DNA from: Carpediemonas membranifera BICM
Lineage: Eukaryota; Protista; Fornicata
Direction of reading: 5' to 3'
Length of the DNA: 64,000 nt
Assembly: GCA_019828565.1 (NCBI GenBank)
Contig: JAHDYR010000041.1
Coordinates: forward strand, 111,665 to 175,664
Each line of letters opens with the position of its first letter. Positions within the stretch are counted from its first letter, which is position 1. Under the pieces are notes generated by a model, which was not told the origin of the DNA, searched no databases, and saw nothing but the letters and a program-made list of their open reading frames with translations. Positions 6,367 through 50,241 of the stretch are shown here, piece after piece. The position numbers and the translations under genes were made by a program.

Positions 6367-6427
6367 ATTCTTGTTTTATTTTCATTTCATTTACACTTCT
6401 TCGTCATCCTCAACGGAAATATTCCAT

Positions 6428-22420: not shown

Positions 22421-24273
22421 TCACTCGCTCGCCGTCTCCAGTTTGCTCACACCGGAGTATACTGCGGCGTGCTCACCCTCAATCAGAATAACGCCATCGA
22501 AGTCCGACTCATGACAGGCCTTGACGACAGCAGCGCGGCTTCTCAGTGTCATCTTCTTGATGCGGCCACTCGCCATGTGTAGAACCGCATCGCTTATCCA
22601 ATGGCCTTGCTTTTTTGCGTTGTCAATGACGAGCACGGTCTTCTTGTTGGCGTGTGCCCATGTCCGTATGGCTTCTGTCGTGAGGTACAGGCTCTTCTTA
22701 TCGAAAAGCTCGTCGGGCTCGAACCAAGTGCCGTGGAATACGACTGACTTCTTCGCCCACGCGGTCAGTCTCGCTCTGAAACCGGCAATGGCGTTATCGT
22801 CCAAGTCCGTGTTGTGAACAAGGTAGTGAAGGGCGTGTGCGATGCAACTCCCATCTGGAGGCACGTTGTGTACATCACAGAAGCGCTTGATGTCTGCCAT
22901 TGCACGAAGGTTGTCATAGCCTCTCTCAGGCTCAGGCTCAGCTGGCTCGCTGACGCTAAGATCTATGATATCAGCACACGGCACACACTCTTTGTTGTTG
23001 GCCTTCTCGGGCTCCGTCTGGGTGTTGGCTTCGCATGTCTTCACTGTCTTCACCTCCGACTCGCCCTTCTTCTCATTTGCCTCACCCTCGTCCTCCTTCT
23101 CCTCAGGCTCATCATGCACCTCTGTCACCTCCTCTACCTCGCCCTCCTCCTCCTCGTCTGACTCCTCTGAGTTGCTATCGACATCAGCGATCTTCTGAGG
23201 GATTGTCATGAGGGCCTTGCGCTTCATGTGGATTGTGTCGCTCTTCCCCGTACGGCGGGGGGTACTCGTTCGTGCTTGGTGTGTGCCCGACTGGGGTAGG
23301 TCGCGGCGAAACGGCGCGGGTGTCGGGCTGGCACCGATGGAGATGTCAGCTGCGTATCCCACGTCTTGCAGCAGCCTCGTGACGGTCTCCTCCAGCTCGA
23401 GTACTCTCTTCTGCGCCTTGTGATGGAGCACTCGTGCCTCCATCGGAAGAGATGGGAGGTCTTTGTGAATCCAGTCCTTCATTTCGAGCAGCTTGGATAC
23501 GCGAAGGTATCTGTCGAACTGGACGTCGACGTGGTTGTCCCCAGCAACCGCAGCTGACTCTCGAGAGGCGCGAATGCGAAGCTCGCCGTGCACCTCCTTC
23601 TGGACTCTATGCCACAGGACGTAGTTGCGAGCGTTATTGTCCTCCCACTCCTTGAGCTTCTGGGCGATCTTTCTCTCGCGCCGGCGCTTGATCGCGCGTT
23701 CTCTAATCTCATCGTCGGACTCGTTGTCAAAGTCCACCTCACTCTCACTGTCGCACAACTCAGAATCGTCGACGCCGCTCTCTTCACCACTGTCCACGCC
23801 ACTCTCATCGTCGACGGGTTCTTTCTTAGCGCTCTCGGCCTTGCCCTTGCCCTTGTCCTTCTCCTCGGCGTCAATGGCCTCAATAATGGCCTTACGCGCC
23901 TTGCGCTTCTCCCTGGCTATACACGATATCAGCCTGGTTGTCGTCAACCCACTTCGCCAGCGCGCCGAGCTTCTTGGAACTTCTTGGTCCGGCGAGTGCC
24001 ATAAACTGCTTCTTCAACTTATCCTGGAGCTCTTCCTTCTCGTCCTTCGTGAGGCGGAATTTCGTAGTGATATGGTTCAGGTTGATTCCTATATAAGCAT
24101 TGCTATGACTACAAACGCTTCCTGATCACTAGATCGAGCAGTTTCCGTTCATCCAGCAAAACCGCGCGAAGGACAGCACATTTGGCATGATTGGTGGTTG
24201 CCTTGGTGTATGCAGCCAATATCGCATCGTACTGTTCCTTGCTAGCGCTCTCAATCCACTTTAGCAAGTCCAT
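22421..24273 (-). CDS. Acidic/coiled-coil protein with C-terminal OTU-like cysteine protease domain; 5' exon structure uncertain
   Basis: NVPPDGSCIAHAL ... GEHAAVY; main ORF 22421-23947, with upstream coding-like segments. Confidence 0.65.
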
Positions 24274-25464: not shown

Positions 25465-26883
25465 TTGTATGGTCGAAATTCTGAAATAGCAATCCAAACT
25501 GAAGCAGCAAAAACTCATCCCATGGAGGCTGTAGCGGCAATAGACGAAGATATCATGAAGCGTTGGTTGAAGAATGTTCCAACCAAATCGCGTACGAACT
25601 ACAACAAGCTTCTGAAAGACGTTTTGGCCAGAATTTGTCAGGAAACCGCCACAGATATCCAGAAGGGCATCGAGATTGTCCGTAGTGACGAGCTGGTAAC
25701 CCATTTGCGCCGGTACCTCGCTGAGAAGCCTCTGGGGACGCAGAAGAAGATCGTTTCGGCTGTTCAGTCTTTCCGGAACTTCGACTTGCCACACCCCGCG
25801 AAGCCGTTGTCCTGGAAAGAGGAGAAAGAGGTGTCGCCTGCATCAGTTGAGAGTCTCCCCAGCCCGTATGGCGCCATTGCCATTCTGCTCAACCAGACGG
25901 GCTGGGAGTATTCGTATCTCCAAGGTAATCTCCCCGATGCGATAGACCTTACCTCGTGCCCGAGCTGGATGGGCTTTGGCACGCTCAAATCGGGATTCCC
26001 GCAGGCCAGTGCTGTATCGGAGGCGCTCAAGGTTCAGGGGTTGACGGTTCGCATGCTTCGCTTTGCGCAGCGGATCGACGTGTCCACCGATAGGATGCAG
26101 TCTATCGGCACGCTAGAGCGCCGCGGCAGACCGCAGGAGAAGCCTCAGAAGGTCATTAAGGACAAGCGCATCAGCCTGACCGATGAGCAGTTCAGGCACC
26201 AGTTGGCGTCCAGTCACTTAACGACCACGCGGCGCCCAACGATCCTCGATCTCAACCCGGAGATCCGAAGCTCTGCCGACCTGGTGCCGCCGACGCTCGA
26301 TGACTGGCTTTACAAAAAGCTCAGGATGAGGATGGTCCAGCTCCACGACCAGCGTAAGCCCGAGGGGGGCGACACGGGAGAGGGCGAGTCTGACGATGAG
26401 GCGCTGTTTGACGAGACAGCTGGCGAGGCAGAGATGCCGGAGACCGTGGTGGAGGGCGAGTTTGACGAGACAGCCGGGTTGGAGATGCTGGAAGGAGAGT
26501 GGGAGGATGAGGAGAGTTCAGACAGCGATGCCGAGGATAGCCTCGTCGATAACCTGTCATTTGTTCTGTCACAACAGGTTGAGTGTGACATGTCTGAGAG
26601 AGATACCGATGAGGGTGTCCGTAGCGGGGCCAATGGAAGTGGGCTCGCTCCGCTCTATGACTCTATGAAGACCAGGGTGCCCAGCAGACGCATTCGCCTT
26701 CGCCGCTATCACGAGAGCGAGTCAGACTTGGGTAGCAGCAGCGACAGCGAGGACGGGATGCCGAAGCTGCCCGATGAGGCCTTTCAGCACATCCGTGATG
26801 CCGGAATGACAACTGTGAGGCTGACGAGGGCCGAGTATGACGACGTGATGGAGAAGAGAGAGCAGGAAAAGCATCAGAAGTAA
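25465..26883 (+). CDS. Hypothetical protein with degenerate tyrosine-recombinase-like N-terminal half and acidic tail (likely ATG 25521)
   Basis: SRTNY..L / TQKKIVSAVQSF (core-binding-like), AILLNQTGWE (Box I-like, no Arg), TVRMLR (HxxR-like); homolog at 55706-56938. Confidence 0.5.
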   Translation: MYGRNSEIAIQTEAAKTHPMEAVAAIDEDIMKRWLKNVPTKSRTNYNKLLKDVLARICQETATDIQKGIEIVRSDELVTHLRRYLAEKPLGTQKKIVSAVQSFRNFDLPHPAKPLSWKEEKEVSPASVESLPSPYGAIAILLNQTGWEYSYLQGNLPDAIDLTSCPSWMGFGTLKSGFPQASAVSEALKVQGLTVRMLRFAQRIDVSTDRMQSIGTLERRGRPQEKPQKVIKDKRISLTDEQFRHQLASSHLTTTRRPTILDLNPEIRSSADLVPPTLDDWLYKKLRMRMVQLHDQRKPEGGDTGEGESDDEALFDETAGEAEMPETVVEGEFDETAGLEMLEGEWEDEESSDSDAEDSLVDNLSFVLSQQVECDMSERDTDEGVRSGANGSGLAPLYDSMKTRVPSRRIRLRRYHESESDLGSSSDSEDGMPKLPDEAFQHIRDAGMTTVRLTRAEYDDVMEKREQEKHQK

Positions 26884-27460
26884 ATGAACGAAGTAAATAG
26901 GTCGTGGGAATGACTCAAACACTGACTAAGCCATCGAATTGGCGCAGCTGACCCCATATTGTTGTTAAATGACCACAAAGCATTCGCTTATGCACAATTA
27001 GCTGCCAGAAAGAACACTACCGTTACTTTGGATCATTCCAGTTCGCCGGAGATGACGCAGGTCCAGAACGCTGCCTTGGAGGGCTGGTGAAGCGGTAGTG
27101 TAGCGCTTACTCACCAAGCGGGCGATGGTCTCGACGGGACGGTTGACGGTCTCAAGGTGGCCCTGCTCTTCGACGTACCAGGCGGACATGCCGATGACGG
27201 AGCGGCGCTGACCCTGGCGGACGTTATCCTCGCCCTGGGTGAAGCTGTTCTTGCCGAAGTACACGTGGATACCGATGGTGAGGCAGGGCTGTAGCATGGA
27301 GGCCGAGAAACCATAAACTGCACGGATCCACAAACGTGGATTGGCCTGAACGACAGCGCTGATGCCCAGACAGGCATATATACATTCATTTATTCATCTG
27401 TGAGGTAGACAGAGACGCCCCTATCCTTTCGAGTCGATACCTTCCCAGGCAGTCGGCCGT

Positions 27461-29510
27461 AAAGTGCACAATTTTGCGATCGCTGTCGCAAACGAAATCC
27501 GTGGAATGATCAGTTACAGTAATATTCAGGGGATTGTTGTTCTATGCGTGCTGCACATTTAACGTTGTCTGCTCTAGAGCCACTACCAGCTTCTCCCTCC
27601 TTTGTAATCAACATCATTATTCATGCTCAGCCATATGGACGATAATACCGGGAATACAAGACGATTTAGTACTACGTGAAGCTTATAATGACATTAGCAA
27701 GCTTGTGTACACAGAAACAATTAATATCAACATCAGGAAGGCAAGAAGAAGATTGCCTATGAGAACGCCAGGGAGAGAACGCCGTGGAAGAATAGTGGTC
27801 CAGACGTAGTGATCAGGGGTGGCGCACGGGGGAGAGTGCCATGGAGAGAGCGGCGGGGGCAGACCGATCCCCTCACTCTTTCACCGTCACGATAACAACG
27901 TCGCCCGCAACCAGTTCGACGTGACTCAGTGCAAATTCCCCCTTGACCACATCCTGGCGCCGTTGTAGGGAGTGGTGACGTCGCCTCATTCGCGTACAAC
28001 AAGGAGCGTTTATAAACCGAGCACATTGTCAACGACATCCTCCATCTCTTCACGGCCAGTCGTTGCATGCATAGCAGCAAGTGAATACGCGACGTTTTCG
28101 TGCATGCAGACGATTCTCTGTTGTCAGCCGTAAAGTGCACAATTTTGCGATCGCTGTCGCAAACGAAATCCGTGGAATGATCAGTTACAGTAATATTCAG
28201 GGGATTGTTGTTCTATGCGTGCTGCACATTGAACGTTGTCTGCTCTAGAGCCACTACCAGCTTCTCCCTCCTTTGTAATCAACATCATTATTCATGCTCA
28301 GCCATATGGACGATAATACCGGGAATACAAGACGATTTAGTACTACGTGAAGCTTATAATGACATTAGCAAGCTTGTGTACACAGAAACAATTAATATCA
28401 ACATCAGGAAGGCAAGAAGAAGATTGCCTATGAGAACGCCAGGGAGAGAACGCCGTGGAAGAATAGTGGTCCAGACGTAGTGATCAGGGGTGGCGCACGG
28501 GGGAGAGTGCCATGGAGAGAGCGGCGGGGGCAGACCGATCCCCTCACTCTTTCACCGTCACGATAACAACGTCGCCCGCAACCAGTTCGACGTGACTCAG
28601 TGCAAATTCCCCCTTGACCACATCCTGGCGCCGTTGTAGGGAGTGGTGACGTCGCCTCATTCGCGTACAACAAGGAGCGTTTATAAACCGAGCACATTGT
28701 CAACGACAGCCTCCATCTCTTCACGGCCAGTCGTTGCATGCATAGCAGCAAGTGAATACGCGACGTTTTCGTGCATGCAGACGATTCTCTGTTGTCAGCC
28801 GTAAAGTGCACAATTTTGCGATCGCTGTCGCAAACGAAATCCGTGGAATGATCAGTTACAGTAATATTCAGGGGATTGTTGTTCTATGCGTGCTGCACAT
28901 TGAACGTTGTCTGCTCTAGAGCCACTACCAGCTTCTCCCTCCTTTGTAATCAACATCATTATTCATGCTCAGCCATATGGACGATAATACCGGGAATACA
29001 AGACGATTTAGTACTACGTGAAGCTTATAATGACATTAGCAAGCTTGTGTACACAGAAACAATTAATATCAACATCAGGAAGGCAAGAAGAAGATTGCCT
29101 ATGAGAACGCCAGGGAGAGAACGCCGTGGAAGAATAGTGGTCCACACGTAGTGATCAGGGGTGGCGCACGGGGAGAGTGCCATGGAGAGAGCGGCGGGGG
29201 CAGACCGATCCCCTCACTCTTTCACCGTCACGATAACAACGTCGCCCGCAACCAGTTCGACGTGACTCAGTGCAAATTCCCCCTTGACCACATCCTGGCG
29301 CCGTTGTAGGGAGTGGTGACGTCGCCTCATTCGCGTACAACAAGGAGCGTTTATAAACCGAGCACATTGTCAACGACAGCCTCCATCTCTTCACGGCCAG
29401 TCGTTGCATGCATAGCAGCAAGTGAATACGCGACGTTTTCGTGCATGCAGACGATTCTCTGTTGTCAGCCGTAAAGTGCACAATTTTGCGATCGCTGTCG
29501 CAAACGAAAT
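27461..29510 (-). repeat. 671-bp repeat family, three tandem units in inverted orientation
   Basis: The same ORF recurs at 27534, 28205 and 28876 (period 671). Confidence 0.93.
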
Positions 29511-31104
29511 GAGCAGCGCTAGTTCATATGAGTACACCAAGGACCTATTTATAGCGTCTTTCCGGCTCTGTTTCCATAGAACACTGACAATCCCCGGGGA
29601 TATACCCTCAATCCTCAAACTCGCCTTTTTCAACCACTTCGACGAAGAAATGCCCTCGAGTGTGGCTTTTGAGATCCCCAACAGAGCAAGTGTTGATGTT
29701 GTCCAAATTAGCTTTGCAGAGCGCCAAATGATGGAAGCCATACTGTCAATGATTCCCCCTCTCAAACCATCCGCGCAAGCCCTCCTCGACTGCGCCCGCT
29801 CCATCCTCACAGACGGCCCCCCGCTTTCCATGAACATCCCATTGGCTCCAGGTCAGGAGCTCCCCGTTGCCCTTCACACGCTCAACCAGGGCACGTTGTG
29901 GGCGTGTCTGATGGGTGCTGGGGCCAACCCAGACCTCGAGGACATGGTTCTGAGGCGGTGTCAGAGCCAAGGCCCAGGCGAAATCGAGATGCACAGCAAG
30001 ATCCGCCGCATTTTCACTCCAGACGACAAGTGCCTCTGGTTCCTCTGCCGCAAGTTCCACTTCTCGCTGAACGTCGCCGAGAAGGACGGTGAGAGCTTTC
30101 AGTGCAATGCGTACGATAGATGCTACCACCACCGCATGTACATGGGCCGACTCTTCATGCTCGACACTGAGCACCACGCCGCCCTCACCAGGGCCAGAAT
30201 GCCCAGGGCCCTCAAGGTTTTCAGCGATGATTCCACCCAGATCGCCAAGACGCCCAAGGGCCTGTGGGCCTGGGGCAAATGCCATCGGAATGACAAATCC
30301 AGGTTCTCTGCCCCGTTCCGCCTCACCTTCCCCGAATGCCCCAGAGTATCCCACCTCGAGGCCAGCCTGCCCCCCTGGGAGAAGCACAGGATGGTGGTCG
30401 ATGTATCACTATGGGCAATAGAGGCCTTTATACTCACCCCTGTCGGCACTATCGAATCAAGAGGGCCTGGGAACGTCTTCAAAGAGGTCGCTTTGCCGAC
30501 AGGATTTGTTCCTGATCACATCCTACATGGATTTAAGACAACTATCCTCTCCATGGGCGATCGTCAAATGATAAGCGGTTGGAACGGCTGTGGACGGTTG
30601 GGTCTTGGGCACAAGAAGAAGCTTTCTGGCTTCATTGACCTTCCCCATCCGGTGGAACAGATCATATTTTGCGATTATAACAACTTTAGCATCTTCGAGA
30701 GTGACAACCGATTGCTATTTGCTGGCAGAGTTCCTGAATACCTTGAATCGTTTGTTGATTTGTATGAGGGCGAGAAATGCGTCACACCAACCCATATAGA
30801 GCTGCCATATCTGCGGACGAAAGGATTCTTCGCCGGGGAGGCGTGGGTCATCTGGGTCACTGAAGGCAAGAGTTATGTCTCGTGCAATTTTGGTGGCTTA
30901 GACAAGTTTTATGTCCCCTTTGAGGCCAGATATGCTTCCATAGATGGCGATCTAGTCGAGAAACCTGCTGATGGCTGCAAATTCTGCAATTCAGCCGGTC
31001 AATGGCTCGAAGTAGTGCGCGTGGCTTCCTTCGTGGCCGAGATGCGTGAGTGTGAGTCGCCCAGAGGTGTTGAAGTTGACACGATCGATAATGTAAAGAC
31101 GTAA
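29509..31104 (+). CDS. RCC1/BLIP-II-like beta-repeat protein (~531 aa)
   Basis: GLWAWG and ISGWNGCGRLGLG motifs; paralog at 46737-48270. Confidence 0.65.
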   Translation: MSSASSYEYTKDLFIASFRLCFHRTLTIPGDIPSILKLAFFNHFDEEMPSSVAFEIPNRASVDVVQISFAERQMMEAILSMIPPLKPSAQALLDCARSILTDGPPLSMNIPLAPGQELPVALHTLNQGTLWACLMGAGANPDLEDMVLRRCQSQGPGEIEMHSKIRRIFTPDDKCLWFLCRKFHFSLNVAEKDGESFQCNAYDRCYHHRMYMGRLFMLDTEHHAALTRARMPRALKVFSDDSTQIAKTPKGLWAWGKCHRNDKSRFSAPFRLTFPECPRVSHLEASLPPWEKHRMVVDVSLWAIEAFILTPVGTIESRGPGNVFKEVALPTGFVPDHILHGFKTTILSMGDRQMISGWNGCGRLGLGHKKKLSGFIDLPHPVEQIIFCDYNNFSIFESDNRLLFAGRVPEYLESFVDLYEGEKCVTPTHIELPYLRTKGFFAGEAWVIWVTEGKSYVSCNFGGLDKFYVPFEARYASIDGDLVEKPADGCKFCNSAGQWLEVVRVASFVAEMRECESPRGVEVDTIDNVKT

Positions 31105-31121: not shown

Positions 31122-33860
31122 ATGACGAATTCTCTGATAACGTGGGTTCTCGGGAATCTTGTCGTCTCATTCCCGCCTGATACGACCGGTGACCACATAT
31201 GTTGCGCCATATACTCGCATCTCTTCTCCTCTCGTCTCCCAGGCTTCAATAAGAGAAAGATACACGAAGAAAACGTATTCCAGCACGCCATCCGGGAATT
31301 GGGCAGCATGAGGAACGATATAAGCCAATGTTTCACCAGCAACGTGAAGAACGATTGGAAGCGTGCAGTCCAAAGGATGACTTCTTCCAACCTTGTCACA
31401 GTTCATCCAGTCAACGACGAAGTTGAACGTTTGCGTGCCCGCGTTCAGGAGCTAGAGAAGCAATTGCGTGACACGACCTGCTTGCTGGACATGATGAGCT
31501 CGCTGAACGCCATTCTGTCCGGCAAGAACAACGACACGGCATTCCACTCGATGTTCAACAGCTTTGCGAGTCGGCTGGGACTAGACACGATAGGAAGGAC
31601 TCAGAAGCGCCGGGAGCCGATTGCCGGGCTGGACATGAGCATACTCAATATCCCAGGCCTTCGCGAGGCACTGTCGGAGGAGGAGGTGGCCGATCTGTCT
31701 TGCTTCATTCCCGTGGAGTATGCCATCCAAGAGGCTGGCGTCACAGTCACAGCTGACAGCTCCAGGCTGACTGTCCCTATCGGTCAGACCGTCAATTTCA
31801 TTGGTTCGCAGGAGCTCATTGACGCAACCGTGGAACGTCTGCAGCTCACCCCGACTGACGCTGTCCGCTTTGGCCAGACAACCAAGCTACTATATGCAGA
31901 CGCGATAGATGCGAAACAGGCACGTGATACTGTCCGGGCCGACAGGATTCATAGACGGCAGGGACTTCGCTCTACAATTATTTCCCCCAACCCCTGGGAT
32001 TTTGTTAGTTCGGTTTTCTTTGACTGTGAGGCCATATGCACCTCGGTCCTTCTTCGTCCGATGGCATTTGTTGCCGATAAGCCTGCTCGGAAGACATGTC
32101 TGGAGGTATGCGCAAAGGACGACGAAGTTGAGGCTGGCAGGGTCTTCAACCTTGAGTTGTGCCTGTGGGTTGACGGCTGGAAGCATGGAACTACTGCAGT
32201 TAAGTTCAGGCTTGGTGACAAGGAGGGCATTGCCATTCCTGGGAAGTTGACCCGGGTCTTCACACTCTTGGAGTTCATCGGCCACGAGGACCAAATTCCA
32301 TCTTTGTACCCCCGTATTGCTGCGGAGATCAGTAACTTGGTTAACCTCCACTTCTGTGTCCGGCAGACTGGCGCTATTGCCCAAATTTGCCGCGTCCATA
32401 CCCTGGCCGACAACAAGGCTCTCCAAGTTCTGCTCGGAACCATGCGCGGCGGCAAGAACAGGTGTGTGTTTTCTGTTCTCAGTGATTCAGAGTTCATTTC
32501 CAACCCGTATGGATTCAGTACCATACGCGATCGTATCGCCGCTGCCAACCCACAGTACAAGGTCATCTCTGTGCAGTTATCCGACCTACTCCTCCGCCGA
32601 CAGATGTACTACGCGGCACAAAAGCAAGAGATTGATCATCTGAGCAGTACACTGGGCCCAGGCAGACGAGTGAGGATCAAAGAGAAGGATCGGATCACCT
32701 TGGATCTTCAACACCGGTACGGTAAGTACAAGTGGGATGAGAATCAGTTCATCCCTCTGTTCCAGGACAGCCCTGCTCTTGCCGAGTTGACAACAGTCGC
32801 CCCGCCGCTGATGCACACCAGCCATGAGCTCCTTGAGCAAGTCGCGTGTCTGGTTAAGATGTTTCCACAACCACCACGCAACCCAGAACTCTCTTTCTGG
32901 CGTCAGCAGAGCGGCAATACTGAGTTCGTCAGAACAGTTGGCTGCAACGAGCAAGAGAGAGCTCGTGCAAGACTGGCAGTCCTGGCTACCTCACATATCA
33001 CGTGTGTGCCAGAGTGTGTGAGAGAGCTTTTCCGTGTCATCGCTCACCTCCAGCATCTTTACTACTCGATGGAGGACCCGACCCCTGAGCTGATCCGCTG
33101 GCATTGGGTCGCCGCCGCAGTCATACACGCGTTCCACACCGCAATGAGCATCTGCCCTGATGGCTCATACCGCACCAAGACCAAGAGTGCGGAAATGAAG
33201 AAGCCTTGTGTCATAACCCTTAAGATGCACGCTGCCGTTGCAGTCATTCCGTTGATCCATCAGGAGACTATGCTCCCTCTGACGTTCATGCTGGAGGAAC
33301 ATTTTGAGCGATCATTCCTGCCCAACATGGAGATGAAGCAACGCGCTCAGAGAGCTCGAATTCTGCATCTCGTCAGTCTGATGTCCCAGGCGAAGTACAT
33401 CAAGCGTGCGTTGCTGAGGACTGAGTCCGCTGGCAGGAGACAGCACAGCATTCCGGCGCTGGGAACACTTGTTGCCATGCATGTACATGAGTGCGTGAAG
33501 AGTGCCCAGATGTGGAAGAAGGTGCGCGGAATGAGTGTGGATCCATTGGAGAACGCAGGTCTAGACCAGCTGAAACGTGATCTCACCACGTTCTGGCGAA
33601 CATTCGACTCGAGAATGGCACAGGATGTGATGACATGCCAGGTAGTCTGGGACGATGGTATGCTGCACTGCCAGTTACCAAAGCGCACGGAACCGCGTAA
33701 TCCCGTGGAAATCACGGTATGTATATGCGAACATTTGGGAGCTGGTCACGATTCGTCTGATGACGAGGCTTATCGCCCAGGGAAGTCGAGGAAGAGTGCC
33801 AAGAAACGGAAACAGCCTACTATTCCGTCATTTGGTGGGTTCCAGCCAGACAATGAGTAA
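31122..33860 (+). CDS. Putative DDE transposase of element A (~912 aa; Transib/RAG1/CMC-like)
   Basis: WVDGWK, LADNKA..GTMRGG..C, PPLMH, RTVGCNEQ.RAR, MH..VIPLI..LPL..LEEHFER, HEC..CIC; all shared with the two paralogs; lies inside a TIR/TSD-bounded unit. Confidence 0.75.
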   Translation: MTNSLITWVLGNLVVSFPPDTTGDHICCAIYSHLFSSRLPGFNKRKIHEENVFQHAIRELGSMRNDISQCFTSNVKNDWKRAVQRMTSSNLVTVHPVNDEVERLRARVQELEKQLRDTTCLLDMMSSLNAILSGKNNDTAFHSMFNSFASRLGLDTIGRTQKRREPIAGLDMSILNIPGLREALSEEEVADLSCFIPVEYAIQEAGVTVTADSSRLTVPIGQTVNFIGSQELIDATVERLQLTPTDAVRFGQTTKLLYADAIDAKQARDTVRADRIHRRQGLRSTIISPNPWDFVSSVFFDCEAICTSVLLRPMAFVADKPARKTCLEVCAKDDEVEAGRVFNLELCLWVDGWKHGTTAVKFRLGDKEGIAIPGKLTRVFTLLEFIGHEDQIPSLYPRIAAEISNLVNLHFCVRQTGAIAQICRVHTLADNKALQVLLGTMRGGKNRCVFSVLSDSEFISNPYGFSTIRDRIAAANPQYKVISVQLSDLLLRRQMYYAAQKQEIDHLSSTLGPGRRVRIKEKDRITLDLQHRYGKYKWDENQFIPLFQDSPALAELTTVAPPLMHTSHELLEQVACLVKMFPQPPRNPELSFWRQQSGNTEFVRTVGCNEQERARARLAVLATSHITCVPECVRELFRVIAHLQHLYYSMEDPTPELIRWHWVAAAVIHAFHTAMSICPDGSYRTKTKSAEMKKPCVITLKMHAAVAVIPLIHQETMLPLTFMLEEHFERSFLPNMEMKQRAQRARILHLVSLMSQAKYIKRALLRTESAGRRQHSIPALGTLVAMHVHECVKSAQMWKKVRGMSVDPLENAGLDQLKRDLTTFWRTFDSRMAQDVMTCQVVWDDGMLHCQLPKRTEPRNPVEITVCICEHLGAGHDSSDDEAYRPGKSRKSAKKRKQPTIPSFGGFQPDNE

Positions 33861-34290
33861 GTTTGAAGAATATAAAGAAGGATTTATGGCGAGACACCCG
33901 TTTATGAATTTACTCGATTGTATGTAATATGATACAGTTCCACGCTTCAGCCGACGGAAGGCTCCTTTATCGGGACCTTTCGTAAATCCGAAGAAAGAAG
34001 TGCGCAATTCGGACAAGATGGATCAATATGAAGAAAGAAGTGATAGCTCAAAGCTGATCAGCCACAAACTGGCGTTTAACGTTTGTGATCGCGAGATTTC
34101 GGCCTGCATGCGCGTTGTTTCCAAGTGTTTGTCCATTCAAGATGTCGCTGCCGAGGTTAACCACATTAATGAGAATCTTTACCTCGATTCACGCATACCG
34201 AAAGAGCTGAACGCAATTGTGCGTTCTTCTCGCATCATTGAAGAAGCTGTGATTGCATTCGCCACAAACAGCATAGTTCGCGGTCAGTAA
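33853..34290 (+). CDS. Possible small spliced gene downstream of transposase A
   Basis: ATG 33853 and ORF 34000-34290 share a frame; a 27-nt GT..AG (33924-33950) would remove the stop. Confidence 0.3.
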
Positions 34291-34893
34291 CCACTGATGG
34301 CGCGAATCTTGATGCACATTGGCTTCTTAGTGCCTGCGTGGATGTTTGATGTTGTTTTCGTTTCTTTTCGCGAGGTTCGAAGACTCTTTGTATTCATTTT
34401 CATCGTCTTTGGAAATAAATCGACTGAATCTTTCTCGAGTCATTCATTGAATTGCTTGGAATAGGTTTAATTTAAATGGAAATGGATGTGCTAGTCCTCC
34501 TCTACGCCTGAATGCGGACACGGCGCATACTGTCTTTTTCGAAATATCCAAAGTGAGTGCAAATAAAAATAAATAAAGTTGTACCCTCAGGATACTTCTA
34601 TAGTTAGGTACTACTCATGGGAGAAGTTTCCTCTCTTTCTGAACTTCCTACAGAGCAGCAGCCTCAATTCTCGCAAAAACCAGTGAATCTTTTTAATATC
34701 TCGCGATTGTACGTTGGAATATTCCCATAGATCTAGCTCGTGTCCTTATTTGCCTTGAACTAACCTTTACTAGATCTATAGAAATATTCCTACGCTCAAT
34801 CTTGAGATTGGAAGAAGATTTGGTCGAAAAATGGGCAAAAATGGGTACCATACCCACCTCTTGACCGAATTTTAATGAATTTTTTAAAGATAC

Positions 34894-34961
34894 TGGGTAC
34901 CTTACCCATGGGTAAGGTACCCATTCGAGGTGGGTACCTCACCCCCCCCGGAGACAGTATG
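34894..34961 (-). repeat. Right TIR of element A
   Basis: Ends ...GAGACAGTATG, followed by TSD GG (34962-34963). Confidence 0.95.
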
Positions 34962-35503
34962 GGATCATGCCAATTGCCGATCTCAGCTCTATGGAGCTAA
35001 GTGCACTTGAGCTCTGAGCCAAGTCTTCTGATTCCATCTTATCGCCGATAAAAAATTGCAAATTTTGAGATACAGAAGATTGAATCTGTCCCCCAGAAAA
35101 CCGAACATACTCCGATGATGTATACTGACTATATACCGTAGTATGGCCTGCTTTCTGGGGGACAGCTTCATTCTTTTGATTGGTTGATTCAGTCATTAGT
35201 TCCCGGCGACTGAGAAGGAGTTGACGCATAAAAACAACAGAGGATACTCTTTAGAACACACAGACTTTGCTGACAAGGCCACTTGGTCGTACGACCACTT
35301 TTGCCTTCGACCTTAAAATGCGAGAGGCAATTTGCTCGACCACCAATCTCGCACATGTTACATCAAGCATGGATATGTCATTAATGCACTCGCATCTATC
35401 ATTTCAGCTGCTTCTTAGGACTTCGAACGCCCTGAAGCACGAATAAGGAATTTGCGTTTATCCTCCGTATATCCCCGGATTAACTGGCCATTCTAACAGT
35501 ATG
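34962..35503 (-). mobile_element. Terminal ~540 bp of element B copy 1, separated from its body by element A
   Basis: Reverse complement of 39546-40090 (one 3-bp indel, few SNPs); ends ...TTCTAACAGTATG. Confidence 0.9.
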
Positions 35504-37557
35504 CGCGAGACACAAGCCAGAAGCCTTCGCCCTTGCCCTGAAGCCACTACTTGTCGATGTGGCCGAAGGCGTCCCGTACACAAACGTTCTGGCCCACTCC
35601 CGCCTCGTCCCACTGCCCAAGCCTGGCAAACCCGACGAGGTCCGGCCCATCGCCATGGGAGAGGCCCTTCGTCGAGTAGCAGCCAAGCTACTAGCCAAGG
35701 CGGTTACCGCGTCCCTCGCGGATGACCCTCTCCTCGATGACCAGTACGGGCGGGGTGAGTCGTGCGGCACAGAAGTTATGGGTCTGCGCCTGCAAGAAGC
35801 GTATTCCCGTGGCCAAAGCATCTGCGCCGTTGATCTCAGCAATGCGTACGGCACCATGCCCCGCAAATTGTTGAGGTCCACAGCCGCCGCGGCCTGCCCT
35901 GTTGCGATCCCGTACTTTGACGCCGTATATGGCAATGGAAGGCTGGTTCTGCCGTCCGGCCGCGTCGTCGAGTCCCTAGAGGGCATCGCTCAAGGAGACC
36001 CACTGTCCCCCATTCTGTTCACGCTGGCCATGCGGCCAATCATCGACACGCTGAAGACGAAATGGGGCGGCGAGTGGGTTGCCTACCAGGACGACGTCAC
36101 ATGGATTGCCCCCCGGGGACGACTAGCGGCGCCATCCAGGGCTTTTTCGATGGAGCTTGTGAAGCTTTCCGACAAATTGGCGTAACAATGAAACCGGCTA
36201 AATGCCAGTGGATTTGTGCATCCGCGCCGCAGAATGCACGTACTGTTCGCGTTACGTGCTCGCCAACTGGAGTAATCGTGGGAATTCCCATTGGCGGCAT
36301 CGAAGCGGAACGGATGCAGCTCATGACGAAGCTAGACGAGCAGAAACAGATGTTGCTTAGTGTGGTGTCGATGGTTGAAGACATTGGAACGGATGGGACG
36401 TCCGTTGCTCTGAATCTTATCCGTTCGTGTATTCTGCCGAAGCTTTCATTTTTGATGAGATCTGTCGATCCAGCCCAACACCGTGAGACCATACGAAACT
36501 TCGAGTCCAACGTCCTGACGCCGGCGATTGCGAGAATTCTTCTCCTAGACCCTGAGAAGTACAACTCACTCCGGCTCGGCCTCGATTTCTCCGATAACGG
36601 CCTCCGCCTGCCCACCCCGAGCATGACCTGGGACGCAGCTTACCTAGCCGCAACCGCCCAACTGCACGATGTGGGCTGGGACAGAACCCCCGACGAATCA
36701 ACCTTCGCCGCCAACGACACCTCCATCGACTGGCCTCGTGGGATGGACCAGCTCTACGGCAAGCCAGTGACTGGCCTTCAGCGCACCCTAACAAAAATCT
36801 CTCGCGCCCATGCAGCAGCCGTCGCCCCGATCGTGGAGTCGACCCCGGTGACCCCGATTCTCGCGGCCGAAGCCGCCCTGTCCCCCTCTCCTATGCGACG
36901 CCGATCCGTGGCGACCTTTTCACCACCATGGTGAGGTCACACCTCGGCGCACCACCGTTCGAGACGGACTCAACCGTCCGCTGCCCGCTCTGCGGTAACT
37001 CGAATGTGTCGTGGCAGCACACGTTGTCCTGTCCTAAGCTCCTGGAGGGTGCCAGGACCATGCGTCATGACCTAGTTCGTGACTGCGTGCGCTCCTTCCT
37101 GTGGAGTAACGACGTGCTTGCCCGCAAGGAGTTCGCCTTGAACAGTCGCACCCGCGGCTACTCGGCCGACCCAGCCTACCAGAGTAACGCTCGCGCCGAC
37201 GTCTATGTCCCGCTGCGTCGCTCTCCCACGGGCAGGGTCGCCAACGAGCCCATCATCATCGACGTGGTGATCTCGAAGGATCAGGCCAACGCCGAGTCAG
37301 ACAAGTCCGCGCAGTACCACAACTGGTCAGCCGAGCTACTGACGGCCGCCTGCGAGATCACTGGCGAAGCGTGCAGTGATGACCAGGGCGAGTCCTGGTG
37401 TGTGAGATTGTGTAAGATGGTCGGCCTGAGTGTGGGGGCCGGCCGCTTCCTGGAGCAGGAAGTGATGCGCTGCATCTGGAACGGCAACGTCCAGATCTAC
37501 TCGGATTACGTCACGCAGTTCGAGCGGGCCACAGCGCAGGACTGGCTGCGGGAATAA
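35504..37557 (+). pseudogene. 3' half of retrotransposon ORF: RT core, CCHC finger, restriction-like endonuclease (two frameshifts, ~36110 and ~36880)
   Basis: Motifs LVPLPKPG..VRPIAMGE.LRR, VDLSNAY, GIAQGDPLSP, YQDD, IVGIPIG; CPLC..H.LSC, RHD, ADV..IIIDV..K. Confidence 0.9.
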
Positions 37558-37746
37558 TTTGTGCTGGAATCTCATCTCGCGTGTGGAAAGGCCGAGGGGG
37601 CCGGCGACGAGGCTGCGGGAGCAGCCGGAGGAGCCGAACAAGGGATGCCCACAGGTGACACATCTAAGTCGACACAGGCGCGGGAATACAGGCGCGAACG
37701 TCTCTGGACGCAGCGTGAAAGGAGGTTTTCGACCTATTAAACGGCG

Positions 37747-39545
37747 ATGGTAGTCTCAGTCTTTGTCAGCAAAGAAGTCGTGGAGCGGCTTCTGAGCGGG
37801 ACTGAAGGAACTATCCAGCTCGAAGATCCTGTTTCCCAGATCTTCGACGCCGTGCGCATTCTGTTTGGTAAGCATGTACCAAAATCTCTCTTTGCCGAAC
37901 ACTGGTCCTCGTACCAGAAAGTCCGCCGCCTCTTTAACGATGTAGAGCTTGTGAAAAAGCTGTTCATTCAAGATAGAGGACGTCCCGAGCGCTTCACCAA
38001 GAGAGTCTCCGAAGAACTCATTGCCACTGTGAGTCCGCTCTTCCCAGTGATCCAGAGGCCCTCAAACCGAGACTTCAAGCAGAGATTACACCAAGTACTA
38101 AGCTCAATCCAGTTGATCAGGAACCTACCGCCGCATCCCGTCCAATTCCTGATGCACCGAATGGACTCGCGAATCCGTATAGACACAGAGGGCCGTGACC
38201 ATACGCTATCCCTAGGCCGCCGCAGGGCTCTACTAGAGCAACTACGGGCGGCGGGATGCCCACGGCTCTCCACCATCGATGAGATTGACAACGGACCCGT
38301 TGCGTCAGCCCACCAAACATCAGGAACGCAAATCGAGAGGGAGGAGATGATGATCGCGGAGCTTATACCCCCGATAAGTCCACCTCTCGGCTCAGGACCA
38401 CCCACCCCCGCCCAGTCACAGGAGACAGGCATCGTGCCTAGACCTAACGACAGCGAGGAGACCAGTCGGCCCACGAATGTCCAGCCTAGACATAACGGGG
38501 CACCCGCTCCCATGCCTGGCGGCCAAAGCGTGGCTGACACCAACCACCGGGGGATGGACGTACCAACGGTCCGAGTGAACCAGGCTATCGCAGCCTTCGC
38601 TCGTGACCTACGGGACGCCATCCACCCGGACCTGCGGGAAGAGCTCTGGCGTGATGCCGACACAGTCCGCCAGACGCTTCTCTCGCCCCCCGCGCTCGAG
38701 CGAGCCATGGGGACGGAGCGCAGGAGGCACCTCACGAAGGCGCAAGCCATCGAGATTGAGACGTGTCTCCTGCGTGCCGCAGGCGGCCTAACCCTGCCCC
38801 CCCACTTCTCGCGCCGGTTCCCGTCGAACGGGATTGTGGCCAAACATGGCTCACGCCGTGTTGCGGCCGCAGCGCACATCGCTCTGGGGCTGCCGCTCCC
38901 TGCTATATTGGCGCACCCTGCAACACAGGCCACCAACAATAGGCAGACCCGAGCGCCTACAAGACCTCTTGGGTTCCTTCCAGACCCCGCCGACGTGGCT
39001 CGCATCGGCCGCAGCCGACCGACGCGGAGGGGAACCAAGGGTTATGTCCGTGCCCTCATCGGAAAGGTCACCGCCTGCGCGGCAGCCAGAGATGAGGACA
39101 AGCGCGATCGTCTCATCGACGTGATGCTGCACCCACAAACAGCACTTCGCCCCCGGAGGACCCGCCATAATCAGGTGGGAAGCACGTCGAGAAGCCGACT
39201 CGCCTACCAGCACGCCAGACGAGGGTACTACAGCAAGTCCATGAGTGCCCTGGTCTCGGAAGAACTGCAGATGACCCCAGCCGAAGCAGAGGAGAAGATG
39301 GTTCGGATGCAAGCTGACCCCTTCCAAGGCAGTCTTGATGACCTCCCAATCCGCCATCCCCTCGCCCCGCTCACCTCGGTAGAGTTCGAAACTCGGGACA
39401 TCATCGATGTCCTGAGCAGTCTTCCGGCCGACTCGGCTCCCGGTCCGTCGGGCATGAGCTTCCTCCACTTGAAGCTCGCCGCGAGACACAAGCCAGAAGC
39501 CTTCGCCCTTGCCCTGAAGCCACTACTTGTCGATGTGGCCGAAGG
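37747..39545 (+). pseudogene. 5' half of retrotransposon ORF, truncated by element B copy 2
   Basis: Open for ~600 codons and contains the pre-RT motif SAPGPSG. Its last codons overlap the sequence that opens the 3' half at 35504. Confidence 0.85.
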
Positions 39546-40630
39546 CATACTGTTAGAATGGCCAGTTAATCCGGGGATATACGGAGGATAAACGCAAATT
39601 CCTTATTCGTGCTTCAGGGCGTTCGAAGTCCTAAGAAGCAGCTGAAATGATAGATGCGAGTGCATTAATGACATATCCATGCTTGATGTAACATGTGCGA
39701 GATTGGTGGTCGAGCAAATTGCCTCTCGCATTTTAAGGTCGAAGGCAAAAGTGGTCGTACGACCAAGTGGCCTTGTCAGCAAAGTCTGTGTGTTCTAAAG
39801 AGTATCCTCTGTTGTTTTTATGCGTCAACTCCTTCTCAGTCGCCGGGAACTAATGACTGAATCAACCAATCAAAAGAATGAAGCTGTCCCCCAGAAAGCA
39901 GGCCATACTACGGTGGTATATAGTCAGTATACATCATCGGAGTATGTTCGGTTTTCTGGGGGACAGATTCAATCTTCTGTATCTCAAAATTTGCATTTTT
40001 TTATCGGCGATAAGATGGAATCAGAAGACTTGGCTCAGAGCTCAAGTGCACTTAGCTCCATAGAGCTGAGATCGGCAATTGGCATGATCCACCGCCGCAG
40101 AAGGTGCCCAAAGAGGCGCTGACGTTGAGCGGTCGATCATGGCCGTTTAACACATCAACGGGGGCCTCATCCCATGCAGTATCCATAACTTTTTACCATT
40201 TTCTTCTAGCTGCACTGGTTGGCAAATGAGCATTTTGTGTCGCCTTCATCATGGCAATATTCGAGATCAAATCCAGATTTGCTTTTTTTGTGCACAAGGA
40301 GCACAACAGCAAATTCGCAAGTAATGCAGATGAAAATCAGATGAATCTTAATCAGGCACTCTCATACACACACTGCTTTAGTTTCGGAGCCAACGTCCAT
40401 AAACTGAAGGAGTTCTGAACATTGTTTCACCAATTGTGTGAAACTGGTGAAATTGTGAAATAGTGTTGAAACGGCCAGAGAAGAAGAAGGAACCCCGGCA
40501 GCGCAGTTGTAGCTGCTCTTATAGAGCTATAGCAACAGCCAAATTGTCTGATTTATCTCACAGACCGTTGCGCATGTACCTGCCTAGTTTTTGTACAAAA
40601 ATCTTGCTTTTTTTAAACTCTACAGAAATC

Positions 40631-43171
40631 ATGGTTGCTCATATTGTGTTCGAGAGCCACATCGGTACAATATATGATGACCAGCCACGCTCAGTTGAGC
40701 GCATGAATTACCTTCTTGGCTGTACCTACTTCGCCATGGTCGGAATTGGCCTCAACTCCGCCAGAACAAGACCTCAGCGCGAGCAATTCTGCCAGCTCGT
40801 CCGCGAGATGGAGGAGGCGGACCTGATCTCCCAGCGCATTCACGACGCAAGGTTCTTCCGCCCTCCAGCAGACTCCCGTCCCTTCCAACGTGCCGCAACC
40901 GCACACGGAAATCAACACCCTCCTCACCCTGTCTTCGTACGGGACGATTACCGCACCCACGCCATCCAGGAGCGTGCTGTGCAGGACTACAACGACTCAG
41001 AGGAGCGCTCCGCCAACTTTTCTGAGATCATGGAGCTCACATCGATCCTGATGTACGTCCGCAATGGCTTCAACTCGACCCAAGAGCTCTTTAAGCTCAT
41101 CAACAACATCTCCCGCCGGCTTGGAAAGCCGATCTCGAAGAACAAGACCGCGGAGGTGCTCATTAAGGACCTTGGCATTGACATGACCAGAATATCTGGT
41201 GTCTCAGAGGCCCTCACTGAGGAGGAGCGCGCCTTCGTCAAGCATCTCGTGCCGTGCAGGTCGGTCTCAGGCAATACAACATGGCGGCGTACCATGTCCG
41301 GCACGCAGTCGCGACTTGAGCTCACGAACCGTTTGACTGTAGCCGACGGAGCCGAGCCGACTCCGTTTTTCGACCACGACCTCGTCGCCGACCACACTTG
41401 GGAGCGACCGACGCTCACCCTCCACTATGACAGCGAATCCGACGCTGTCCAGCACTACCAGTCCCTCAAAGGCAGTGTAGGTATCGCCCATCTGGGCAAG
41501 CGACTGAACAGCTCGACCTGGGACAAGGTGGAAACGGTGTGGTTTGATGGCGTGTACTATCTGCAGCAGGCAGTGCTTCACCCGGAGTGGCTCGAGTCTG
41601 ACCAGACGAACTTCGAGCGTTGCTCTCGTGCCCTTCAGGACCCAGGCCATGTCGAGTTCCAACCACTAAAACTACTCCTGTGGCTCGACGCATGGAAGGG
41701 ACATACCGCAACGTTCAAGATCCGCATCTACGACCCGTCAGGCTTCACGTTCCCTAACCGCATCACTCCCCCCTTCCGACCCGTTGAGTGTCTTGCCGGT
41801 GAGAAGGAGCTGACGGAGGAGGGAAACCTTCAACTCGTTGAGGAAGAAGTCGAGCGGATCTATCAAGCCCTCATACCGATCAGAGGAACTGACCAGGTCA
41901 CCACCTTCGACCAAGTCATCGTCATGGGCGATCACGCGGCCATCAGGAAGCTGTCATCCGGCATCGAGGGTAATGGAGGGCACTATCCCCAGCCCTTCAA
42001 CAGCATCCGTCGAGACCACAAGGCGCTGCACCCCATTCCGGCGCACTCTCGGGTCACCTTGCATGATTTGCTCGAGCAGAAGGCAGCGTTCCACGCCGTG
42101 CAGGCCGACCCCGACCGTGTGCAGGACCCGAAAGAGGAGTATGGCAACTTCTCCGACAAGAGGGCCATCTTCGAGAACCGGCCAGAGCCCCGAGTCATCC
42201 ACACGGAGCGAGTTGTCTTTTGTCCTCCGATCATGCACAACTCGCACCGCCTGCTCGAGCAAGTGGCACGGCTATGCGCCAGCTTCCCCGCTGATCGGAA
42301 CGCAACTGCCGTAGACAAGCGCAAGCTCCAGCGCATGTCATCCAACCGCAGTATTGACCGCACTGTCGGGTGCAACGAGCAGTCTGCTGCCAGAGTTCGC
42401 ATGGCGAACACCACGAACGAGGATTACGAGGCTCTTCCTGAGTCCGTCCAAGATATTGTGCGACTCATTGGCTATCTCCAGGCTCTTTACTACTCAACCG
42501 AGCCTGTCACCGACAGCAAAGTCGCATTCCACTTCTTGGCCGCGTCCATGTGCCACCTGTTCCACGTCATGCTCAGTCTGCAGGCACACCAGACAAAGCT
42601 GGCGTTGCTCCCTCCTGGGCAAGCAGACAAGGCGGAGAAGCCATGTGCCCAGACACTCTATGTCAACAGCAGGCTCACTGCCCAGCCTCTTCTTCACGAT
42701 CATCTCCGAATTCCTCTTTTTTACCTCCTCGAGGAGTTCTTTGAGAGAGAGTTCATCAAGAACCAGGAGGTCCGAGCCGAGTTGCACAGGTCGGCCATGA
42801 TCGAGAAGCTGTGTTTGACCGAGCAGACCACCCTCATCTGCACGTTCTTAACGGGTATTCGCTCGTTCGGTCGCCAGGACTACTCAGTCCCCCCGCTGAA
42901 CAGGCTTCGTCGTGTCCGAGTCCACCAATGCTGCAGACAAGCTCGCTCATGGTTCGCCATTCGCAGCCACATGGAGGCAAGGCACCAATTCCATGCCACG
43001 GCGGCGGTGGTGCGCCTCTTCCAGGAGCTCGTTGACGAGATGTGGCAGTACGTCAACGATTATACGGCTTTGGCATGGGACGAAGAGTCTGGGGTGATGG
43101 TTTGCGAGTTGGCAGACATGGGTGAGGAGCTTGTTTGCTGCATTTGCGGTCATGCACGCGCTGAGCAGTGA
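40631..43171 (+). CDS. Putative DDE transposase of element B (~846 aa from ATG 40631; frame open from 40463)
   Basis: WLDAWK, MGDHAA, PPIMH, RTVGCNEQ, LEEFFER, HQCC..CIC; intact ORF. Confidence 0.75.
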   Translation: MVAHIVFESHIGTIYDDQPRSVERMNYLLGCTYFAMVGIGLNSARTRPQREQFCQLVREMEEADLISQRIHDARFFRPPADSRPFQRAATAHGNQHPPHPVFVRDDYRTHAIQERAVQDYNDSEERSANFSEIMELTSILMYVRNGFNSTQELFKLINNISRRLGKPISKNKTAEVLIKDLGIDMTRISGVSEALTEEERAFVKHLVPCRSVSGNTTWRRTMSGTQSRLELTNRLTVADGAEPTPFFDHDLVADHTWERPTLTLHYDSESDAVQHYQSLKGSVGIAHLGKRLNSSTWDKVETVWFDGVYYLQQAVLHPEWLESDQTNFERCSRALQDPGHVEFQPLKLLLWLDAWKGHTATFKIRIYDPSGFTFPNRITPPFRPVECLAGEKELTEEGNLQLVEEEVERIYQALIPIRGTDQVTTFDQVIVMGDHAAIRKLSSGIEGNGGHYPQPFNSIRRDHKALHPIPAHSRVTLHDLLEQKAAFHAVQADPDRVQDPKEEYGNFSDKRAIFENRPEPRVIHTERVVFCPPIMHNSHRLLEQVARLCASFPADRNATAVDKRKLQRMSSNRSIDRTVGCNEQSAARVRMANTTNEDYEALPESVQDIVRLIGYLQALYYSTEPVTDSKVAFHFLAASMCHLFHVMLSLQAHQTKLALLPPGQADKAEKPCAQTLYVNSRLTAQPLLHDHLRIPLFYLLEEFFEREFIKNQEVRAELHRSAMIEKLCLTEQTTLICTFLTGIRSFGRQDYSVPPLNRLRRVRVHQCCRQARSWFAIRSHMEARHQFHATAAVVRLFQELVDEMWQYVNDYTALAWDEESGVMVCELADMGEELVCCICGHARAEQ

Positions 43172-43292
43172 GTAAAGGAGTTTTATTGGTCAGTACATCC
43201 CATTTGGTGTGTTTCCCCCAACTACCAATTTTTTTTTTCAACATTGGTAGTTTCACAATTTTCACATTACGTCACTTGTTTGGTGAAAAACA

Positions 43293-44060: not shown

Positions 44061-44135
44061 CATACTGTCAACATCCCTAGATTATCTTTGCTAAACCCTA
44101 GATTATCTTCGACCTCAAAAAGCTAGATAATCTAC
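44061..44135 (+). repeat. Left TIR of element C, with three CTAGAT[TA]ATCT motifs
   Basis: CATACTGTCAACATCCCTAGATTATCTTTGCTAAACCCTAGATTATCTTCGACCTCAAAAAGCTAGATAATCTAC. Confidence 0.95.
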
Positions 44136-44766
44136 GGTTGCAAGAAAAAATGAACTCGACGATGAGCCGGAGCTGGATCTTCAAAGTGGTATGGTAGTAC
44201 TTGGCTATACCTAAGCAATACGCATGCGCAGTATCAAACTTTAAATCCTGCTAGAAAAAAGTAACATAGGGACAAATTGGAATTGAGAGTTGAGACTCAA
44301 AAAACGGGCAGGGGGGAGGAAATGGTCCATAAGTACGCCTTATGGGTCGCTTCCTCCCCTCTGCCCCTTTTTTTATCGCAAAATCGATTTGCCGGATTTG
44401 ACACATGTTTGATGTGATCAAAATGGATTTGATAGACATGAGTCCAGATCATGCAGTTGGCCATCCTGAAGCGCTAGGGCGGTCTGCAGACCGCAGCAAT
44501 GCCTCTGCTGAATGCCCTTCGCCTGACGGACAGGACGCGCGTTGACTCTAAAGGACTGCATGTTTCGGCATTAAAAGAAGGTGTGGAATACAACGGAGTC
44601 ATCGCCGAACCGCTCCGACCAAGTCGGTTATTAGGACATCGCGTTCAGACGCCCTCTGCAATTACCAAGTCAATAGATGGGAGTCGACCTGATCAGCACG
44701 TCATTCGGGGTCTCAGGTGACCCTATAGCTGAGCTTGGCTGGGCTCTGCTGCGGCCATGGGCCGCT

Positions 44767-46700: not shown

Positions 46701-46736
46701 GCATTCATGATTCCAAGGTCTAATTATTTACTCGAT

Positions 46737-48270: not shown

Positions 48271-48650
48271 CGATTCCAGCGCTCAGTTCGGTGGCGACTT
48301 GTTCTCGTTCTTAAACTGCTCAATGAGAAAGGATGACAGCAGAAACGACGTCCTGGAGGACGTCCTGGTGTTGGGAGGGGGTGTTCTTGAGCACGTGATA
48401 GTGGACGGCCTTGTTGGTGGGCGCGGCCCATGAGAAGCACCAGCGCAAGTAAAGCATTTTGCAATATATTACTTGCGTTTGCGCTGTCGTTCTCCGGGCG
48501 CACTTCCCCGGCCGCTCTTTGACACGGACATTGCCGTGGGGCCTCCTCCTCGTAGCTGTTTCCTCCCCGGGTTCTGTAAATGGTGTGTTTTGATTCATCT
48601 GTCCCTTTGTTTGTCTCGGCGTTGAACTTTGAAAGCAATAAATGGCTACG

Positions 48651-48890
48651 ATCAAGATATTATTGTCCAATGAGGCTCTTTACATCGCCTTCTAGCTCGA
48701 TATTGATGTTGTTAGTGATTTTCTAGAGTACAGCACCAGTTTCGGTAATAGGGGGACAGACGAGCGCAAACAACTACATGGCTCCGAACTACACGCGTCT
48801 TGGCGTTGATATTGGTTATTAAATGGACTGTTCGTAACATATTGAGGGATTTCGTCACTGTACTCGAATGCACAAGTGTGCAGTTTATGC
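48651..48890. repeat. ~240-bp dispersed repeat of element C (direct copy 51921-52160, inverted partial copy ~58602-58790)
   Basis: Direct sequence comparison; intergenic in all three positions. Confidence 0.88.
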
Positions 48891-48971
48891 ATCTGCCGGA
48901 ATCTCATTTAAGGGAGATAACAGCGTCCTAAACAACAGGGATCTGTCAGTCATTATCAAACTTTACTTCTC

Positions 48972-50174: not shown

Positions 50175-50241
50175 CTTGCTTCATAAATGACTGTTTATTG
50201 CCCAAATTTTGTGTTGCGGCGTGACCGAATCGAACGAGAAC

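Follow-up and report, generated by a model that had tools for sequence, protein, structure and literature searches.

The window, by which we mean the whole 64,000-nt stretch of Carpediemonas membranifera DNA analysed here, consists almost entirely of nested terminal-inverted-repeat elements, as seen from comparison of the window with itself and from the junction sequences. The elements, of 12-24 kb with 6-11 genes each, belong to a previously undescribed lineage of giant transposons that was active recently and has a predicted RAG1-type transposase fold. The ORFs A, B and C are very probably the autonomous DDE transposases of these cut-and-paste elements. A search of titles and abstracts, mostly in the open-access literature and excluding Repbase, found no paper describing them, and the string 'transpos' has 0 occurrences in the Carpediemonas genome paper (PMC8516963).

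The transposase gene is a single intronless ORF. In element A it lies on the plus strand at 31122-33860 and encodes 912 residues, numbered from the ATG at 31122. The intact frame of element B is in copy 2 (40574-43171, plus strand), and that of element C is on the minus strand (58863-61211). A fourth transposase copy in the window, frameshifted, is that of B copy 1 (7437-9784, minus strand). BLASTP comparisons showed 26% identity over 803 residues between A and B (E 5e-66), 26% over 793 residues between A and C (E 1e-63) and 30% between B and C (E 3e-92), a similarity beyond chance by sequence comparison. The earlier note on this DNA had listed ordered motifs shared by the three proteins despite low overall identity; all were found in that order in A, B and C, at 26-30% identity over about 750-800 residues. 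The RT[VT]GCNEQ motif holds within the Carpediemonas-type clade, but the alignment shows no conservation of it in distant relatives. The three 'paralogs' of the note are indeed related, but they are the transposases of three separate nested elements rather than a host gene family; the note does not mention the elements with their TIRs, target site duplications and cargo. The two B copies (7379-10003 and 40607-43230) differ at 11 positions, 6 of which are single-base gaps, and long-read errors, not decay, may account for the broken frames of many genomic B copies. No sign of expression of ORF A was seen: the one possible RNA run covers only 33998-34418, outside the ORF, with a 424-nt minus-strand contig directly downstream of the transposase gene.

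Element A (10522-34961, plus strand, 24,440 bp) is inserted in a minus-strand copy of B and flanked by a 2-bp target site duplication (TSD), GG; the empty site is present at 40089-40090 in the second B copy. Its left TIR (10522-10598, plus strand) starts with CATACTG, is about 70-77 nt long and contains internal GGTACC palindromes, and its right TIR is at 34888-34961 (minus strand). The interrupted B copy 1 lies on the minus strand, with its 3' part at 1-10521 and its 5' end, cut off by the insertion, at 34962-35503; the full B of about 12.13 kb ends 1,083 bp before the window. B copy 2 starts with CATACTG at 39546 on the plus strand, runs to 44060 and continues at 63940 beyond element C. Element C (44061-63939, minus strand, 19,879 bp), which splits B copy 2, has TIRs of about 75 nt and a 2-bp TSD, AA, and its empty site is found in the uninterrupted B copies L005, L013, L016 and L020. 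L003, a derivative of A reduced by deletion to 4.3 kb, is flanked by its own TSD, TC, and an 11.6-kb relative in GCA_002919055.1 (L031), with CATACTG ends and the TSD GC, is inserted in a gypsy pol gene. Thus, 2-bp TSDs are present in four elements, two of them verified by empty sites. One end of C reads CATACTG and its right end CATGCTG, and a second GCA_002919055.1 family (L037/L040) apparently has CATGCTG ends; the terminal consensus is therefore CATRCTG.

Other repeats were also observed in the window. Between the two head-to-head B 5' ends, 35504-39545 holds one circularly permuted non-LTR retrotransposon unit with a reverse transcriptase match (Pfam E 6e-12) and a restriction-like endonuclease-type C-terminus, bordered by a direct repeat of 66-67 bp; the arrangement looks like two B insertions in neighbouring units of a tandem array. 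Element A contains about 8 copies of a 671-bp unit in both orientations at 99% identity (13141-14356, 17676-22364 and 27339-29510), which could give double-stranded RNA. The noncoding regions of each element contain imperfect palindromes of 65-230 nt, in many cases separating genes that diverge (5113-5177, 35073-35178, 39871-39979 and 63563-63698; also in L031, L033 and L036).

A search of the Carpediemonas membranifera assembly (24.2 Mb, 69 contigs) showed 91 exact ends of the B/C type and 7 of the A type, and 0 matches to reversed control patterns. Facing B ends form nine pairs 11.8-12.1 kb apart, facing C-type ends are 15-21 kb apart, and A measures 21.1 and 24.4 kb. At 13 further loci the B body recurs with 99-100% identity over 7.5 kb, and the flanks vary from copy to copy. 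Such near-identical dispersed copies with different flanks indicate recent, repeated transposition. The transposase profile gave at least 84 genomic matches, a few of which are fragments of one gene, and the genome holds at least eight transposase families of 25-57% mutual identity. We considered whether the ORFs could instead be host paralogs, domesticated or inactive, that segmental duplication had spread, with the loss of zinc ligands described below representing decay. A motif common to all CMCT lineages is lost, many copies carry frameshifts, and at least one nested arrangement is also duplicated, on contig C7. However, the TIR ends are base-exact with different flanks at each copy, 2-bp TSDs are present, the DDE triad is intact across families of only 25-30% identity, and the A deletion derivative has a TSD of its own. 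The empty-site comparisons contradict host paralogs, which we therefore reject as very improbable. Two local arrangements were observed elsewhere in the assembly. On contig C67 (749167-793906), five B ends point the same way at intervals of 11.1-11.25 kb, forming a tandem array of B units with one exact end per unit. A 743-bp MITE with CATACTG ends (L010:2987-3729) lies within a transposase gene; where a TSD would be expected after it, its left flank is repeated in inverted orientation, suggesting alternative-end transposition or misassembly.

When 1.84 billion proteins were searched exhaustively with an HMM, 52 relatives were detected, namely other Carpediemonas families, proteins from GCA_002919055.1 and from two contigs of ENA metagenomes, and distant metagenomic proteins, about 33 in number. 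Close homologues from Carpediemonas membranifera bear the annotation 'hypothetical protein', a locus search with closer alignment led to contigs of GCA_002919055.1 only, and a word-indexed protein search returned only the query itself. Neither individual proteins nor profiles of 9 and 49 rows gave anything relevant in Pfam or among PDB sequences (E≤10 each), and similarity to the RAG1 core or HzTransib was not detected by the 49-sequence profile among PDB sequences at E≤10. Pfam matches to Transposase_21, DUF4218, DUF1258, DUF1280 or Plavaka were absent from the 9 + 33 members scanned; the 33 distant relatives have no informative Pfam domain, and the names of the 20 relatives looked up include none of these families. 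The family thus has no sequence-level link to named superfamilies, and its placement therefore depends on the predicted fold. The contigs carrying distant relatives are too short to span both element ends, and the tree was built from members of this family alone. Some distant relatives (P0020, P0025, P0030 and P0035) are long, up to 1,379 residues; the first three have an additional tesmin/CXC-like Cys-rich region, and P0035 adjoins an LRR gene (L044).

The AlphaFold2 model of A (residues 270-875), built from the 49-row homologue alignment, has a pLDDT of 90 and a pTM of 0.91, as against a pLDDT of 38 for a prediction from three sequences alone. DSSP analysis showed that the secondary structure of the model follows the RNase H order: D351 (codon 32172) is in strand 1, D430 (32409) directly follows strand 4, and the fifth strand stops at PPxMH and is followed by a helical insertion and then by the EExFE helix with E729 (33306). 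These three residues occupy the expected RNase H positions in the secondary structure of the model and are the predicted catalytic triad. E729 is taken to be catalytic from its position as the last Glu of the EE-x-x-E helix, as in Transib and RAG1. Nearly invariant positions in the alignment are W349, D351 (46/47 rows), D366, E389, D430 (47/47), H565 (41/42), E725 and E729 (33/35). The first and second Asp are 76-86 residues apart, and the second Asp and the Glu 261-299. In a Foldseek search against solved structures, the top 45 rows were all RAG1, HzTransib or BbRAG1L (best E 1.2e-8), and a wide structure search independent of Foldseek gave identical top matches. VIA-align superimposed the model on RAG1 with Z 15.0 (r.m.s.d. 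5.7, 412 residues aligned), on HzTransib with Z 13.8 (371 aligned, extending into the C-terminal part) and on BbRAG1L with Z 13.1; the P element transposase scored Z 12.4-12.8, fairly close to RAG1. The earlier note had called these proteins DDE transposases of a RAG1/Transib-like kind, and the predicted fold agrees with it. Foldseek against viral structures gave no match at E≤0.001, and a viral origin is therefore without any sign.

Since transposases of the CACTA, Mirage, Chapaev and Plavaka types are absent from the solved-structure matches, their ranking is unable to split Transib from CMC. Among predicted models, clusters with Transposase_21, DUF1258 and DUF1280 reached TM 0.48-0.56 and RAG1 clusters 0.50-0.53, and the best match (TM 0.59) was an unnamed cnidarian cluster. 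The predicted models of CACTA, Mirage and RAG1 are thus about equally close, making 'Transib' too specific a label. The placement near Transib/CMC as a new branch in a unicellular eukaryote, as proposed in the earlier note, is supported, whereas a specific Transib/RAG1 affinity is not: CMC models score equally, and the 2-bp TSD suits CMC and not the canonical 5-bp Transib. In comparison with the published description of the CMCT group (PMC12730594), the predicted model has the RNase H-fold DDE domain related to RAG1 and Transib, and CATRCTG ends with a 2-bp TSD agree with 5'-CA..TG-3' termini and TSDs of 2-5 bp. H565 would correspond to the third conserved His between the second Asp and the Glu in that work. 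Because the ends and TSD fit and both zinc motifs do not, we provisionally file the elements as a CMCT-related lineage that functions as those elements do, rather than as a member of a named superfamily.

A true element of the Transib/RAG1L branch, whose RCC1 propeller and PHD genes would be an independently recruited RAG2 analogue, is improbable in our estimate. RAG1 and Transib are the top solved-structure matches, but this ranking does not discriminate, with no CMC structure among the PDB matches. Language-model features also place RAG1 clusters first (0.92-0.93, 166-170 shared), but no HMM match to RAG1 or Transib sequences was obtained. The EExFE spacing, which is that of the SEEAQE helix of Transib, and the identity of CATACTG to the Transib/RSS heptamers CACAATG/CACAGTG at 5/7 positions point in the same direction. 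Neither asymmetric TIRs nor a 5-bp TSD was seen, all four elements having 2 bp, although TSD length is reported to be labile in some Transib (bioRxiv 10.64898/2026.08.26.747230). A RAG2-like kelch(-PHD) gene linked to the transposase was not seen either: the neighbour is RCC1-like, and the PHD fingers are separate genes. The RCC1 gene is missing from B and L031 and distant from the transposase in C, and it was rejected as a RAG2 homologue since RCC1 is no kelch propeller.

A very divergent branch nested in a named CMC superfamily (EnSpm/CACTA, Mirage, Chapaev or PlavakaB) is less remote, but still unlikely. It would accommodate the xMH and FER motifs, which resemble CACTA, and the predicted-model clusters with CMC domains. 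The 2-bp TSD and CA..TG ends fit CMC and also PlavakaB, which has CATCA ends and TSDs of 2-3 bp (PMC12730594), and Chondrus has EnSpm families of 16-20 kb with 4-5 ORFs (PMC6431247). However, the Pfam scan of 9 + 33 members gave 0 matches to CMC or Plavaka domains, the 52 HMM relatives include no CMC domain (33 scanned) and no CMC name (20 looked up), and the CATRCTG ends differ from the CACT[AG] termini of EnSpm/CACTA, which were not seen.

The zinc ligands of this group are progressively missing. Of the C(2)C motif after the second Asp and the H(3-4)H motif before the Glu (PMC12730594), A retains only C448 and H703, and B and C have neither Cys and neither His, in keeping with the eroded CxxC/HxxxH ligands of the earlier note. 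C(2)C is present in P0021, P0023, P0024, P0032, P0037, P0038 and P0039 and H(3-4)H in P0023, P0024 and P0032, so that all four ligands are kept in the last three, distant metagenomic proteins. The GCA_002919055.1 proteins mostly retain the same two ligands as A, and the close families of B and C have none. The series ties the family to the CMCT group and shows that the zinc site was lost stepwise while the enzymes continued to move. The earlier note suggested the C-terminal Cys/His cluster (H789, C791, C867 and C869 in A) as a possible replacement. Its cysteines are conserved (C791 in 28/30, C867 in 22/25 and C869 in 24/27 rows), and the model places the cluster in a C-terminal domain of its own that is rich in beta structure. 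However, P0023, P0024 and P0032 carry C-terminal cysteines together with the full zinc set, and the cluster therefore predates the loss. A newly evolved replacement was thus rejected on this co-occurrence and on the separate domain. A second zinc site at the cluster is plausible by analogy, and it may have rendered the first site dispensable. RAG1L also has a Cys/His DNA-binding tail (PMC10462144), with a spacing that differs from that of the Carpediemonas cluster.

Each element carries several additional intronless ORFs. In A, an RCC1-like beta-propeller gene (29509-31104, plus strand) ends 17 nt upstream of the transposase gene, has a feature score of 0.97 to a Fornicata RCC1 cluster and has homologues in C and L032. 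A SET-domain gene (17065-17733, plus strand) matches Pfam SET over the cut-off (E 2e-5), and its family profile matches EHMT2 (E 1.4e-6). A PHD-finger gene (14501-15859, minus strand; Pfam PHD E 0.01, under the cut-off) has homologues in B, C, L031, L032 and L036. An OTU-like cysteine protease gene (22421-23947, minus strand) is assigned by motif only, with an invariant DGxC and His in 4 homologues, and Pfam and PDB gave no match. A HEPN-like gene (12116-12679, minus strand; Pfam HEPN_Swt1 E 0.004, under the cut-off) has 97% DNA identity to its copy in C. In the minus-strand part of B copy 1 at 1-10521, GNAT-like (6428-7087), OTU-like (2736-3698), caspase-like (684-1925) and PHD (1-660) genes are present. 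The caspase-like assignment is by motif only (invariant GH and AxC), the database search giving no match, and GNAT has Pfam matches in L033 and L036, with no more than a resemblance in B. The cargo of C comprises HEPN-like, RCC1-like, SET, OTU-like, PHD-like and kinase genes (kinase Pfam E 5e-24). ORFs 18309-19097 and 51075-51920 adjoin the SET genes and have a chromodomain-like end (KVKWxGYP type) with no Pfam match. The cargo gene at 25465-26883 and 55706-56938 is common to A and C (78% identical) and to dozens of other loci, and a gene of this type is the target of another A insertion (L002). The cargo families adjoin homologous transposases in GCA_002919055.1 and in an ENA metagenome at 22-30% identity, and the cargo is therefore old. 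A and C have common blocks at 91% and 97% DNA identity whereas their transposases are 26% identical, indicating that cargo was swapped between elements. The nearest published parallel is the movement of TET/JBP cargo among fungal transposons (PMC12730594).

We propose that a transposase dimer would bind the palindromic repeats within the ~75-nt TIRs, cut both ends using two metals held by D351, D430 and E729, probably by forming a hairpin on the flank, as in RAG and Transib, and insert with a 2-nt stagger. The Carpediemonas branch would have lost the CxxC/HxxxH zinc site stepwise and kept the C-terminal Cys/His site, which is older and probably serves as a tail that contacts DNA and is stabilised by zinc. 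The SET, PHD, GNAT, OTU-like, kinase and caspase-like cargo, which is conserved and swapped, might keep the element's own chromatin active; this is the weakest step, for which we see even chances, and an anti-silencing or self-activating role of the cargo is suggested by analogy. More tentatively, and at less than even odds, the elements could represent a new superfamily-level RAG1-fold branch with an active enzyme lacking a zinc site thought universal in its clade, in which giant elements exchange a self-contained chromatin writer/reader/eraser kit, possibly with a propeller/PHD partner steering the transposase to chromatin like RAG2. The full-to-half-to-none CxxC/HxxxH series in recently moving transposases is a natural one, in which the function of the zinc site of RAG1/Transib can be tested directly. 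With this lineage, the clade that gave rise to V(D)J recombination gains a deep protist branch, and the elements show that multi-gene cut-and-paste elements with conserved histone-modifier-type cargo exist beyond fungi. As the 24-Mb genome has 80 or more transposase loci and was described without mention of transposons (PMC8516963), many of the 'hypothetical' and chromatin genes in the Carpediemonas annotation may be transposon cargo.

Comparison with known systems showed that the elements share with RAG1/RAG1L (ProtoRAG) the predicted fold (Z 13-15 across some 400 residues), the D-D-E order with a helical insertion between the second Asp and the Glu, and CA..TG ends matching the RSS heptamer at 5/7 bases. 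However, identity is 12% with no HMM match, the zinc ligands are lost, no kelch RAG2L is present, and the elements have 2-bp instead of 5-bp TSDs, symmetric TIRs and 12-24 kb with 6-11 genes. Transib (HzTransib) is alike in its fold (Z 13.8), its single intronless transposase ORF and its EE-x-x-E helix, but the spacings of its D125, D224 and E435 are 99 and 211 residues compared with 76-86 and 261-299 here, and the Carpediemonas elements differ in lacking CxxC/HxxxH, in the 2-bp TSD and in the large cargo. EnSpm/CACTA and Mirage of CMC share the 2-bp TSD, CA..TG ends, repeats within the termini, DxxA, MH and FER-type motifs and predicted models at TM 0.48-0.56, and EnSpm also has enlarged multi-ORF elements in Chondrus crispus (PMC6431247). 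In contrast to these, the Carpediemonas elements have no Transposase_21, DUF4218 or DUF1258 Pfam match, CATRCTG rather than CACT[AG] ends, a lost zinc motif and conserved chromatin-type cargo. Fungal Plavaka, ESTA and KDZ (Kojima 2025, PMC12730594) differ in cargo (TET/JBP vs. SET, PHD, GNAT, OTU-like and kinase), Plavaka has no Pfam match here, and Plavaka and ESTA retain the C(2)C and H(3-4)H motifs that A-C do not. They are nevertheless similar as large DDE elements whose epigenetic-enzyme cargo moves between transposon lineages, and PlavakaB also has ends starting with CAT and TSDs of 2-3 bp (PMC12730594).
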